In this document: positions 66 through 34,624 of the stretch, piece after piece
How the letters are laid out: each line of letters opens with the position of its first letter
How positions within the stretch are numbered: the stretch's first letter is position 1
Source: Octopus sinensis
Lineage: Eukaryota
DNA: 64,000 nucleotides
Assembly (NCBI RefSeq): GCF_006345805.1
Contig: NC_043007.1
Coordinates: forward strand, 48,050,001-48,114,000
Direction: 5' to 3'
The notes under the pieces: model-generated
Seen by the model: only the letters and a program-made list of their open reading frames with translations
Database searches by the model: none
What the model was told of the DNA's origin: nothing
Position numbers and translations under genes: made by a program

Positions 66-156
66 TACTGGGATAATGACTTGGAATATGTTGCTCAGAA
101 ATGGGCAGAAAATTGCAAGTTTAATCATGAGAATGCATATCGACGAATAATACCTG
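66..156 (+). CDS. Module 1 CAP exon A: [30 protein letters not shown](G)
   Basis: ttttcag acceptor, gtaag donor; CAP W..L...AQ.WA..C.F.H motif. Confidence 0.93.
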
Positions 157-33100: not shown

Positions 33101-34624
33101 GGGTAACCATCCAGCTGTAAAAACCATGCCAAAACTAACCTTGCCATGTAAAAAGTACTCAGTCCCATCTGCTAAGAGGTTGGTGTTAGGAAGGGCATTG
33201 AACCATAAAAGCCATGCCAAAACAGACACAGAAGTTTGGTGCCGTCTTCTGCCTGGCCAGCTCCTGTCAAACCATTCAACCCATGCCAAAATGGAAGGCA
33301 GAAATTAAAGAATAATGACGGTGATGAAAACAGAATAAAGATACTTGAATAATATAGGGATATATGAAAGACTACTAATACCAAAAGGCATTGATAACTA
33401 ATGAGCTACTGGTAATCAAGATTTACATTAGCTATAATATCAGATTACCTGATGTACTTCATGTATATCGAATAACCTAACTACCTCAGATTACGTAAAT
33501 GGTTCTCTTTCTGACAAGCTCACAGTAATAACTTAGCTGTCTACAAAAAACAACTCTTAGATATCTCAGACATTTAATATACTGAAGCGATATCTTTGGT
33601 CCCTCATATATACTACAGTAGGAGGGATGGCAGTGGTGGTGGTAGTGGCGGTGAGGTTATTATTTCTTAGAAAAACTAAAGAAGTCGCCAGAAATTTTCT
33701 TATTATATTCTACTGATAAGTCCCTATATCTTAGAATGGATATTTAAAGCAAAATATATCTAATCATCATTATCACCACTTGTCACTTTTATTATCACTG
33801 TTTCAATGTGATTTTCTTTGCCATTGTAGACTGAATAGATGCTAGTATGATGCTTAATACTATTTCAATTAAGCATCCATTAGACTAAACATCTTAAGAA
33901 CTGGTTTTACTAACATTTCCCACATCTTCCTCATTCTTCTCTTACCTGTATCATCATTTTCTACCAGTACACATTACATTTTTGTATACAAGTCATTATC
34001 CATTCATATCACTTGACTAGAACTAGAACATTTGTCTCTGCTGCATACATCAGCTGGTTTCTTCAACCACCAGACACATTCTCAACTCAGCTGTGCACAA
34101 TCTTTCATGTGGATTAATGTTACACATTCCATACATCATGCATGTGTCATTTCTTTCCAATCTCTGAAGCAGATCTTCCACACTCAGTGTCCATGTCCCT
34201 ATTCCATAACATTTGGTACCACACATCTCACACCTCCTTTCTGAAGTCTAACTCTACACAAAGAATCAGAATGAACATGTTCCCCCAACTTTTTTGTCCC
34301 CTTCCTTATACTAACAACTACTCTTTCACCATATCCAGCTCTTTTGTTATTTATGTCACATATGCATTTATCACACCTGAAGAGACCCTACCTACATTTT
34401 TTTTTGTATTTCTCATTGAACTTTCTTACTAAATTTGAAATGATACCACTTCTGAGATAGAGGTGAGGTTTTGCCTTCTCTATGAAACAAATTCTTGATT
34501 TTTACAGTGGACTGTTCTCGAGGCAAAGAGCATTATCAGTGTGGAAAATATTACAAAAAAGAATATTGTGCTAAATACTCCAATGTTCCAGTCATATGTC
34601 CTAAGACATGTAACTTGTGTCCAA
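66..34624 (+). CDS. Spliced multi-module CAP-EGF-ShKT (Tex31/Mr30-like cysteine-rich secretory) protein; 15 exons; 5' end upstream of the window, 3' end unresolved
   Basis: join(66-156,2452-2588,3310-3398,8953-9017,9250-9351,11271-11387,12940-12986,13632-13710,14948-15039,22705-22795,27741-27877,28601-28689,31982-32046,32279-32380,34508-34624). All introns are GT..AG and the donor phases chain 1,0,2,1,1,1,0,1,0,1,0,2,1,1,1 with no stop. CAP motifs HN..R, WDNDL, GQNL, WYGE, GHYTQ, VW..S..IGCG and CNYGP are present. Confidence 0.88.
540..1385 (-). mobile_element. Degenerate non-LTR retrotransposon RT/3' fragment (RTE/L2-like)
   Basis: Minus strand reads [28 protein letters not shown] (YADD-type RT motif); only its 3' end is retained in copy 2 (about 23190-23290). 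Confidence 0.65.
1480..1650. repeat. (AT)n/(GTAT)n microsatellite
   Basis: Direct reading; source of the IY-repeat ORFs. Confidence 0.95.
2452..2588 (+). CDS. Module 1 CAP exon B: (G)[45 protein letters not shown]
   Basis: ttctttag acceptor, gtaag donor; GQNL, WYGE and GHYTQ (CAP signature 1). Confidence 0.95.
3310..3398 (+). CDS. Module 1 CAP exon C: [29 protein letters not shown](A)
   Basis: ttttacag acceptor, gtaag donor; VW...IGCG and VCNYGP (CAP signature 2). Confidence 0.95.
3640..4720 (+). mobile_element. Decayed mariner transposase remnant (paralog about 28930-29790)
   Basis: [11 protein letters not shown] (HDNARPH-like) and APSNFHL (APSDYHL-like) remnants; multiple stops. Confidence 0.7.
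6113..6970 (+). mobile_element. Two tandem tRNA-derived octopus-type SINEs with internal (TG)n
   Basis: Head ...aagaagcttacttcccaaccacatgattctgggttcagtcccactg (B-box-like GGGTTCAGTCC) and tail gactgaaacaagtaaaaga; the family recurs throughout the window. Confidence 0.75.
7252..8530 (+). mobile_element. Full-length defective mariner element (about 1.28 kb)
   Basis: TIRs TCAGGTCATCCCATAAGTTCT / AGAACTTATAGGATGACCTGA flanked by TA. Transposase starts at ATG 7435 ([15 protein letters not shown]) and has stops and frameshifts; HQDNARPY and [15 protein letters not shown]34D motifs at 8144-8455. Confidence 0.93.
8953..9017 (+). CDS. Module 1 exon D: (A)[21 protein letters not shown]
   Basis: ttttcag acceptor, gtgag donor; phase 2 to 1; GN......PY end of the CAP domain. 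Confidence 0.88.
9250..9351 (+). CDS. Module 1 EGF-like exon: (D)[33 protein letters not shown]
   Basis: actttcag acceptor, gtaaat donor; six Cys with CLNGG, C.C.C and G..CE EGF pattern. Confidence 0.92.
9430..9780 (-). mobile_element. Octopus-type SINE, antisense, with (CA)n
   Basis: Reverse complement of the 6113-6970 family. Confidence 0.65.
9860..10660 (+). mobile_element. Decayed Tc1/mariner-superfamily transposase (non-DD34D, probably DD37D-like)
   Basis: Remnants [41 protein letters not shown] and [12 protein letters not shown]. Confidence 0.7.
11271..11387 (+). CDS. Module 1 ShKT-like exon: (M)[38 protein letters not shown]
   Basis: tttttacag acceptor, gtaagt donor; six Cys ending CPxxCxxC. 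Confidence 0.9.
11870..12570 (-). mobile_element. RTE-tail-derived repeats (two copies)
   Basis: Match the reverse complement of the ...gctgcaccagactccagtctgatttggc...ggatgcccttcctaa tail seen at 23755 and 62760. Confidence 0.55.
12940..12986 (+). CDS. Inter-module linker exon: (S)[15 protein letters not shown]
   Basis: attgtag acceptor, gtaatg donor; phase 1 to 0 joins the ShKT exon to the next module's N-terminal exon; Pro/Lys/Thr-rich. Confidence 0.72.
13632..13710 (+). CDS. Module 2 N-terminal exon: [26 protein letters not shown](G)
   Basis: ctttccaacag acceptor, gtaag donor; C..KY......H..C pre-CAP motif as in molluscan CRISP-like proteins. Confidence 0.85.
14948..15039 (+). CDS. Module 2 CAP first-helix exon: (G)[30 protein letters not shown]
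   Basis: tgtttag acceptor, gtaag donor; HN..R..V.P.A..M..M CAP start. Confidence 0.93.
16505..18095 (+). mobile_element. Helentron/HINE (DINE-1-like) non-autonomous element with an internal insert
   Basis: 5' actagcattatgatccggcgttgccggg hairpin; 3' aaatttgaatgaaattggttgcgtagttctcaagtt...acagacagatacacattctcagttttatatatag end typical of HINEs. Confidence 0.45.
16690..17560 (-). mobile_element. 5' UTR/ORF1-like fragment of an unclassified LINE
   Basis: Minus strand reads [47 protein letters not shown]; higher GC than the flanks. Confidence 0.35.
18192..20962 (-). mobile_element. 5'-truncated R4/Dong-clade non-LTR retrotransposon (RT + CCHC + REL endonuclease), pseudogenised
   Basis: Motifs [48 protein letters not shown]...[29 protein letters not shown] and KYKDL. 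One in-frame stop (about 20313) and two frameshifts. (TAA)n on both sides. Confidence 0.9.
21220..21709 (-). mobile_element. Second R4/Dong 3' fragment (different subfamily)
   Basis: Minus strand reads [56 protein letters not shown]...[17 protein letters not shown]; bounded by (TAA)n. Confidence 0.85.
21823..22203 (-). mobile_element. Third R4/Dong 3' fragment (older)
   Basis: ORF 21969-22412 includes [38 protein letters not shown]...ALGSIP; bounded by (TAA)n. Confidence 0.75.
22705..22795 (+). CDS. Module 2 CAP exon A: [30 protein letters not shown](G)
   Basis: Paralog of 66-156 with intact splice sites and 4 substitutions. Confidence 0.93.
23755..24960 (-). mobile_element. RTE-clade LINE 3' fragment
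   Basis: Minus strand remnants [41 protein letters not shown] and MLHSSET; shares the conserved tail with 62755-64000. Confidence 0.8.
25339..26600. mobile_element. Unclassified element bounded by about 80-bp inverted repeats (possible Penelope-like remnant)
   Basis: 25339-25421 is the reverse complement of 26520-26600; the interior shows only faint RT-like residue ([12 protein letters not shown] on the minus strand). Confidence 0.3.
27741..27877 (+). CDS. Module 2 CAP exon B: (G)[45 protein letters not shown]
   Basis: Paralog of 2452-2588; intact frame and splice sites. Confidence 0.95.
28601..28689 (+). CDS. Module 2 CAP exon C: [29 protein letters not shown](G)
   Basis: Paralog of 3310-3398; intact. 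Confidence 0.95.
31210..31600 (-). mobile_element. tRNA-derived SINE, second family (related copy 41200-41430)
   Basis: Minus-strand head ggcccagtggctagggcagcagactcg...aggattgcagtttcgattccc (A/B-box-like); agaaagttgtgg/agcagggttcaccac block shared with 41340-41410. Confidence 0.6.
31982..32046 (+). CDS. Module 2 exon D: (G)[21 protein letters not shown]
   Basis: Paralog of 8953-9017; intact. Confidence 0.88.
32279..32380 (+). CDS. Module 2 EGF-like exon: (D)[33 protein letters not shown]
   Basis: Paralog of 9250-9351; six Cys retained. Confidence 0.92.
32600..32880 (+). mobile_element. 3' end fragment of a CRE/NeSL-like REL-endonuclease LINE
   Basis: Reads [24 protein letters not shown], like the conserved C-terminal WL.QRLS.AIQRGNA motif. 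Confidence 0.5.
34508..34624 (+). CDS. Module 2 ShKT-like exon: (M)[38 protein letters not shown]
   Basis: Paralog of 11271-11387; gtgagt donor; CPKTCNLC is a canonical ShKT end. Confidence 0.92.

Follow-up and report, generated by a model that had tools for sequence, protein, structure and literature searches.

Replacements exceed silent changes between two tandem CAP-ShK type II genes of Octopus sinensis: a candidate case of diversifying selection amid gene conversion

Introduction

The molluscan CAP-ShK type II proteins are composed of a CAP domain, an EGF-like part, and poorly recognisable ShKT motifs, and their oyster members are mantle-specific (PMC6409789). In the habu genome, the venom copies of the cysteine-rich secretory proteins (CRISPs) present a ratio of nonsynonymous to synonymous substitution rates (KA/KS) above 1 (PMC6062510), and for the opsins divergence peaks at selected exons have been described under gene conversion (PMC3924837). 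In this work, we analyzed two tandem genes of Octopus sinensis that we assign to the molluscan CAP-ShK type II family, as a further member and not a new type. They are located in a 64,000-nt stretch of contig NC_043007.1 (48,050,001 to 48,114,000, forward strand), and this whole stretch is hereafter called the window. An earlier note on this DNA had described a strong excess of amino-acid-changing differences between the two copies and had proposed diversifying selection. The excess is present, and the explanation we favor, with moderate confidence, is diversifying (positive) selection pushing the two copies apart, while the disulphide framework is under purifying selection.

Excess of amino-acid replacements between the two copies

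The comparison of the window with itself by BLAST revealed a tandem direct duplication on the plus strand, in which positions 3–11,601 are colinear with 22,642–34,838, the paralogous genes being ~23–25 kb apart. The colinearity is interrupted by copy-specific insertions, transposons included. On the basis of stop-to-stop open reading frame (ORF) inspection and pairwise alignment of the copies, we rebuilt six exon pairs, all with AG acceptors, GT donors, and mutually consistent phases. The duplication units and the exons are listed below; where no other evidence is given, exons were placed on borders and phase.

1..11601, plus strand: duplication unit copy 1, from the colinear BLAST chain to 22642–34838; cut by the window start
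22642..34838, plus strand: duplication unit copy 2, the part homologous to copy 1, from the self-BLAST chain
66..156, plus strand: gene 1 exon A, CAP domain (YWDNDLEY…); AG/GTAAGA borders, phase 0 to 1
2452..2588, plus strand: gene 1 exon B, CAP domain (…GHYTQ)
3310..3398, plus strand: gene 1 exon C, CAP domain (LVWASS…YVCNYGPA)
8953..9017, plus strand: gene 1 exon D, end of the CAP domain and short hinge
9250..9351, plus strand: gene 1 EGF-like exon, six cysteines (…GPQCE); borders, phase, and alignment to CreCAP-ShK4/6 and bivalve relatives
11271..11395, plus strand: gene 1 ShKT-like exon, six cysteines, TAA stop
13632..13712, plus strand: gene 2 exon N1, N-terminal cysteine pair of the CAP family; ORF and CAG/GTAAGT borders
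14947..15039, plus strand: gene 2 exon N2, start of the CAP domain; ORF and borders, the Pfam CAP match beginning here
22705..22795, plus strand: gene 2 exon A
27741..27877, plus strand: gene 2 exon B
28601..28689, plus strand: gene 2 exon C
31982..32046, plus strand: gene 2 exon D
32279..32380, plus strand: gene 2 EGF-like exon
34508..34632, plus strand: gene 2 ShKT-like exon, TAA stop

Exon N1 of gene 2 aligns with the 'C..KY..I..HTAC' block of the relatives, and the gene 1 counterparts of N1 and N2 fall before the window start.

Up to positions 11387 and 34624, the ends chosen in the earlier note, the six exon pairs have a length of 601 nt and contain 36 differences, corresponding to 29 nonsynonymous and 2 synonymous codons; these are exactly the counts that had been reported. 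Up to the shared TAA, the length is 609 nt, with 37 differences and 30/2 codons, the additional one being a nonsynonymous K/E at the terminal residue. The nonsynonymous/synonymous codons of each exon were also identical on recount: A 4/0, B 7/0, C 4/1, D 2/0, EGF-like 3/1, and ShKT-like 9/0. In exon B, the seven nonsynonymous codons correspond to 9 nucleotide differences, with 0 synonymous, and among the 18 differences of exons A–C only one is synonymous. The nine to ten nonsynonymous codons of the ShKT-like exon are all within its 3′ two-thirds.

The method of Nei and Gojobori (NG86) gave three synonymous differences (Sd) over 120.7 sites and 34 nonsynonymous differences (Nd) over 485.3 sites, with dN/dS of 2.9 (one-sided Fisher p = 0.04). 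With pairwise maximum likelihood under the Goldman and Yang model (GY94), the dN/dS ratio (ω) was 5.2, 4.5, and 3.5 for the equal, F1x4, and F3x4 options, and the likelihood ratio test (LRT) gave p-values of 0.005, 0.014, and 0.040, respectively. The pairwise check that the earlier note had suggested thus places ω at 2.9–5.2 (p 0.005–0.04), values that are nominal and refer to two sequences. Under the mutation spectrum derived from the introns (transition/transversion ratio 1.6, AT-rich), 25% of the non-stop changes are expected to be synonymous, against 3/37 observed (p = 0.008); when the five multi-hit codons, which are possible multi-nucleotide events, were dropped, the p-value was 0.02. 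Finally, we simulated drift with the same intron spectrum, and no stop arose and the 39 family-invariant positions stayed untouched in 0.015% of the runs. Unconstrained neutral decay is thus rejected, as the genes present no stop and 0/39 invariant positions altered (P = 1.5e-4).

Given two sequences and three silent differences, relaxed constraint together with small-number noise is a serious rival, although we consider it unlikely. According to this explanation, tolerant surface sites drift at ω ~1 and the low synonymous count is a fluctuation of small numbers. Coherently with it, the three synonymous differences stand against 6.2 expected at the local neutral rates (P = 0.13), and dS is not significantly below the non-coding divergence (p = 0.29). 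On the other hand, the binomial test and the LRT reject ω = 1 (p = 0.005–0.04), and if ~20% or more of the codons are fully constrained (the 39 invariant ones stay untouched), a gene-wide ω of at least 1 needs ω above 1 elsewhere.

Comparison of exons and introns

The divergence of the exons was then compared to that of the surrounding non-coding DNA. In the 5′ half of the duplication, 94 of 3710 non-coding positions differ (2.5%), whereas in exons A–C the proportion of nonsynonymous sites that differ (pN) is 6.7% and that of synonymous sites (pS) is 1.6% (pN vs non-coding, Fisher p = 6e-4). In the 3′ half, pN is 7.3%, pS is 3.5%, and the non-coding divergence is 8.1%, without significance for pN against non-coding. 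The pN of exon B alone is 8.2%, compared to 1.5–2.1% locally (p = 0.0006–0.0016), and both exons B and C have a pN 3–5 times the rate of the flanking introns. More precisely, all the 9 differences found in the span 2437–3026 (590 nt) fall inside exon B (P = 2e-6), and all the 5 differences of the span 3236–3728 (493 nt) fall inside exon C (P = 2e-4).

The earlier note had also stated that the exons look more diverged than some adjacent introns. This is true for exons A–C, with exon-only differences around B and C, but not for exon D and the EGF-like exon, which are below the intron rate. The latter observation, with a pN of the ShKT-like exon similar to the local intron rate, is what relaxed constraint with noise would produce; conversely, that explanation does not account for the excess in exons B and C.

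Mosaic divergence and gene conversion

The non-coding divergence between the two copies varies strongly along the duplication:

around exons B and C: 1.8%
5146–6092: 3.3%
near exon A: 4.1%
near exon D, the EGF-like exon, and 10786–11146: 6–7%
around the ShKT-like exon: 12%
colinear blocks 4229–4577/29429–29782 and 4812–5061/29788–30038: 12–14%

The intron blocks diverged by 12–14% directly adjoin blocks diverged by 0–3%. Identical runs of 464, 330, and 314 nt are longer than the maximum obtained in 5,000 permutations (308), and the difference between the 5′ half (2.5%) and the 3′ half (8.1%) has a p-value of 7e-15. Such a mosaic is what gene conversion, or else partial re-duplication, leaves behind, and the 12–14% blocks are probably a record of how old the duplication really is. 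As the mosaic derives from conversion, any single neutral rate is uncertain. Nevertheless, conversion alone is no source of asymmetry between nonsynonymous and synonymous changes, because a converted tract is reset at its replacement sites as much as at its silent ones. As to the possibility, raised in the earlier note, that recent conversion fully explains the low synonymous count, conversion does reduce dS, but the imbalance goes beyond what it can give.

Another explanation is modeled on the opsins. An old functional divergence would have been shielded from conversion, with selection removing the converted alleles that lose paralogue-specific residues, and a dN/dS above 1 would then be the result of an erased dS, not of fast substitution. 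This requires a duplication that is 12–14% neutrally diverged or older. The mechanism is documented (PMC3924837), and it agrees with the 12–14% blocks lying next to the long identical runs, with the contrast between the 5′ and 3′ halves, with the coincidence of the divergence peaks with exons A–C, and with five intronic differences just 5′ of exon B (2405–2436). However, the replaced codons alternate with synonymous sites at a spacing of 3–50 nt, and a tract sparing the replacements should spare silent differences too: at 8–14% divergence, 9.8–16.9 synonymous differences are expected and three are seen (P = 0.012 to 4e-5). We consider this explanation quite improbable, and it would itself still be selection for divergence between the copies. 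Ectopic conversion patches from a diverged paralogue were also evaluated and rejected, the exon patches being without synonymous differences.

Distribution of the replacements in the protein

The replacements described in the earlier note (NHENA to DHDDG, NRNR to YHNQ, and the cluster in the C-terminal half of the ShKT-like part) are all present, as is the change of NTSNVL to NKKNVF, with which copy 2 loses the N-T-S sequon. Overall, charge is altered at 9/30 replacements and one sequon is removed. It had also been claimed that all cysteines and CAP motifs are unchanged: all 17 cysteines are kept, but two replacements fall inside the classical CAP signatures, so for the motifs the claim is valid at the level of the pattern only. 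These replacements are L/M in GHYTQ[LM]VW and V/A in LY[VA]CNY, the latter at a site that is otherwise an invariant V in 15 relatives.

In the predicted model, the changed residues lie mostly in loops, as had been proposed: 24/30 replacements are in non-helix/non-strand positions, compared to 121/202 (p = 0.011). They are also clustered along the sequence (p = 0.03). Derived states occur in both copies, and the respective tree branches are 0.14 and 0.09. The replacements fall preferentially on columns that vary in the family (entropy 2.13 vs 1.41, p = 1.5e-4), a preference that relaxed constraint on tolerant sites would also generate.

Protein family and predicted structure

Both genes encode a CAP domain followed by EGF-like and ShKT-like C-terminal cysteine arrays. 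The Pfam CAP domain (PF00188) was found with E = 1.4e-21 and 78 bits (cut-off 21.1) in gene 2 and with E = 9.8e-17 in the gene 1 fragment. The labels EGF-like and ShKT-like are based on the six-cysteine patterns and on the alignment to relatives. For the EGF-like exon, the match to Pfam EGF_2 is below threshold (E = 0.29, 12 bits, cut-off 22.1) and occurs in copy 1 only, and this part presents six cysteines and short predicted strands. The ShKT-like exon has a sub-threshold match to Pfam ShK (PF01549) in copy 2 (E = 0.66, 11 bits, cut-off 20.9) and no match in copy 1; its six-cysteine spacing ends with 'CP.xC.xC', in a region where the predicted model has a predicted local distance difference test (pLDDT) score below 50.

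In the full-length protein search, the nearest proteins have 36–46% identity over 98–100% of the query. The full-length relatives include CreCAP-ShK4/6, proteins of Mercenaria, Ruditapes, Dreissena, and Gigantopelta, a nemertean protein, and XP_014791246 of O. bimaculoides. All the cysteine columns are common to the two genes and to the CAP-ShK type II relatives in the alignment. The protein tree places the window genes as sister to the O. bimaculoides relative (support 97/95), whose annotation as 'cysteine-rich venom protein latisemin-like' is a homology-based naming. An exon-B search among the ORFs of genomic contigs returned relatives that are only 53–56% identical. Moreover, positions 3371–18314 of the ENA contig ctg11890_120x_l contain a distant CAP–EGF gene, with 36–55% identity per exon, and its exon boundaries match those of the window genes (…MLRM|, …RRIPG|, …GHYTQ|), which indicates that the intron positions of this gene family are old.

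The product is predicted to fold as a CAP alpha-beta-alpha sandwich. In the AlphaFold model, the pLDDT of the CAP core is 76–96, and two regions fall below 50, namely residues 118–134 and the entire ShKT part (222–259). The Foldseek matches were Ves v 5, triflin, stecrisp, pseudecin, natrin, and GLIPR1 (E = 1e-11 to 1e-9, probability 1.0), with template modeling (TM) scores of 0.6–0.7 on the target. Using phmmer, the E values against snake CRISPs were 4e-30 to 1e-20. A CRISP of the vertebrate type was ruled out, since the hinge has a single cysteine and the phmmer alignment to pseudechetoxin stops at residue 207.

The CAP cavity residues H40, E113, and H130 are identical in both copies. The first acidic position of the cavity (gene 2 residue 94, ~27760) is an invariant Gln (GQN) in 17/17 aligned family members; the snake CRISPs carry GEN at this first cavity Glu, whereas the window genes and their family carry GQN. 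The proteins are presumably secreted, the changed residues may be ligand-facing, and a venom role would be conceivable.

Two separate genes

The earlier note had called the two units modules; that they are modules of one protein was not borne out. The donor of the ShKT-like exon has phase 1 and the sole N1 acceptor has phase 0, so their splicing leads to an immediate stop, and the single multi-module protein was rejected. The out-of-frame splice between the ShKT-like exon and N1, with both ShKT-like exons running into a conserved TAA, indicates that these are two tandem genes.

A strong donor-like GTAAGT at 11388 and GTGAGT at 34625 are located 8 nt 5′ of the TAA common to both ShKT-like exons. 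The relatives extend past the ShKT part as 'CPTAAY…' and a hydrophobic tail, and the phase of the GT fits (A + CN = Thr). From these sequence features, the GT suggests a putative ancestral or alternative splice to a membrane-anchor exon; in a simple scan downstream of the ShKT-like exon, no C-terminal tail exon was found. Scanning 11400–13631 for the signal-peptide exon of gene 2, no ATG-started hydrophobic exon with a phase-0 donor was found, and the first exon of this gene may lie elsewhere or outside the rule of the simple scan. The tblastn of both proteins against the whole window returned the two genes and no third copy.

The structure of the locus bears also on a group of artefacts and biases that could imitate selection: haplotypes mis-assembled in tandem, exons that received ectopic conversion from a third, diverged paralogue, or synonymous sites constrained by splicing enhancers or cephalopod RNA-editing structures, with a lower dS as the result. 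The exons are short (65–137 nt), and splicing signals may constrain silent sites there; clustered multi-nucleotide differences also exist. Yet the copies differ by transposon insertions and by the 12–14% blocks, and between the copies there are upstream exons that belong to gene 2, all of which is unusual for haplotypes that were collapsed or duplicated. A third paralogue as donor would bring many synonymous differences, contrary to the single one of exons A–C and to the two-gene content of the window, and the intron yardstick is independent of constraint on synonymous sites. Altogether, we regard these explanations as very improbable.

Mobile elements and repeats in the window

The other features recognized in the window are mobile elements and repeats:

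7483–8452, plus strand: Mos1/mariner-type transposase remnant (Pfam HTH_48 8e-13, Transposase_1 4e-8)
18375–21038 and 21377–21679, minus strand: non-LTR (long terminal repeat) retrotransposon (RVT_1 2.5e-20, zf-RVT)
12359–12595, 15969–16081, 23738–23921 (minus), and 62784–62932 (minus), both strands: short interspersed repeat family, ~75–83% identity
around 6094–7134, 26692–26924, 31593–31734, and 35342–36373: further repeat copies
51175–53524, plus strand: second element similar to a long interspersed nuclear element (LINE), with fragmented ORFs and a weak RVT_1 match

The Mos1/mariner remnant is present only in the C–D intron of copy 1 and partly explains why the two copies differ in length. 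The block 4229–4577 also contains a mariner-like ORF that has decayed (…FHYNKARPH…). The non-LTR retrotransposon lies inside the long N2–A intron of gene 2, flanked by (ATT)n microsatellites, and its LINE ORF at 18375–19319 is 60–65% identical to relatives from many marine invertebrates, shrimp and cnidarians among them, with no taxonomic signal. Low-complexity sequence rich in (TA)n extends over more than 1 kb at 40000–41300, with a G+C content of 24.5% over 40–42 kb. No host gene was recognized in the 36–64 kb of the window.

Discussion

The results support in part the diversifying selection proposed in the earlier note. The imbalance between nonsynonymous and synonymous changes, the contrast between the CAP exons and their introns, and the rejection of decay are in its favor; the unevenness of the signal, the two sequences, and the unstable baseline are not.

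If diversifying selection is the cause, the duplicates would still exchange sequence by gene conversion, which would keep much of the introns, along with the synonymous sites, nearly identical. On this homogenised background, replacements in the CAP exons would accumulate faster than neutral changes since the last homogenisation, for the most part in the loops, with the scaffold and the cavity residues left unchanged. The replacements in the C-terminal half of the ShKT-like part would instead accumulate at a roughly neutral rate on a fixed disulphide frame. The copies could in this way be driven toward different binding surfaces or different patterns of charge and glycosylation. A more specific version, which we advance only tentatively, is that of a young CAP-ShK type II pair with exon-centred acceleration amid conversion, in which the CAP loops and the ShKT-like tail are driven apart in an episodic 'fast phase' and the introns stay nearly identical, in a lineage whose venom-type CAPs reportedly evolve slowly.

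Several points weigh against diversifying selection. The comparison includes two sequences and only three synonymous differences, and p-values between 0.005 and 0.05 carry modest weight when the pattern was chosen after reading the window. The nearest relative found is only 46% identical, so the test is confined to one pair. Tandem and multi-nucleotide changes are common here and inflate dN. The neutral baseline is unstable, ranging from 0–3% to 12–14% by block, and when dN is set against the aligned non-coding DNA as a whole (5.1%), its excess is at the margin of significance (p = 0.05), as relaxed constraint with noise would also have it; without the three most diverged non-coding blocks, the p-value is 0.001. 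Furthermore, half of the gene is without excess: the pN of exon D and of the EGF-like exon is ~0.6 times the local intron rate, with the local intron at D 7% diverged, and that of the ShKT-like exon is ~1.3 times it, which is not significant. The assignment of replacements to loops is weak where the pLDDT is below 50, in residues 118–134 and in the ShKT part. In addition, published work places the coleoid venom CAPs as a group mainly under negative selection (PMC4619613), and any likeness to toxins would be conjectural, in a family whose oyster members are mantle-specific (PMC6409789).

Among the coleoid venom CAPs, a young pair of this kind, with ω above 1, would represent an episodic departure and not a new phenomenon. 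If confirmed, it would be a case of positive selection in a lineage and a family described as mainly under purifying selection, it would offer a definite locus at which the diversification of secreted cysteine-rich proteins in cephalopods can be studied, and it would supply ~30 candidate specificity-determining residues for functional study; if not, the pair exemplifies in an ordinary way the well-known dN/dS above 1 of duplicated secreted proteins.

Among the known systems, the CAP-ShK type II proteins (CreCAP-ShK4–7 of Cumia/Colubraria reticulata, the Conus Tex31/Mr30 clade, and those of bivalves; PMC6409789) have the same domain order as the window genes, and Pfam misses the ShKT part in them as it does here. 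The window genes differ in having a shorter hinge without the 'C..CPN.C.NGLC' cysteines, a trait common only to the O. bimaculoides relative, and in a single EGF-like and a single ShKT-like unit, with no hydrophobic C-terminal tail found. Expression within the family is diverse, the Cumia genes being salivary-gland specific and the oyster ones mantle specific. The vertebrate CRISPs (pseudechetoxin, triflin, stecrisp, and natrin) also have a CAP domain followed by a cysteine-rich C-terminal extension, but the C-terminus of the window genes is EGF-like and ShKT-like, instead of the CRISP hinge and ion channel regulatory (ICR) domain.

As regards evolution, the window pair recalls the classical accelerated evolution of snake venom gene families, such as the crotaline phospholipase A2 (PLA2) and the habu venom CRISP copies (PMC6062510): there as here, tandem duplicates of a secreted cysteine-rich protein present more replacements than silent changes and a higher divergence in exons than in the flanking introns, on a cysteine framework that is kept. 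Here, however, there is one gene pair in one genome, and only a part of the gene shows the excess. The red/green opsins, described with the model of Teshima & Innan (PMC3924837), are likewise tandem duplicates with largely homogenised introns and sharp exon-centred divergence peaks. Unlike in the opsins, the synonymous sites within the peaks are here as homogenised as the introns, and this fits new replacements better than long-retained ones.

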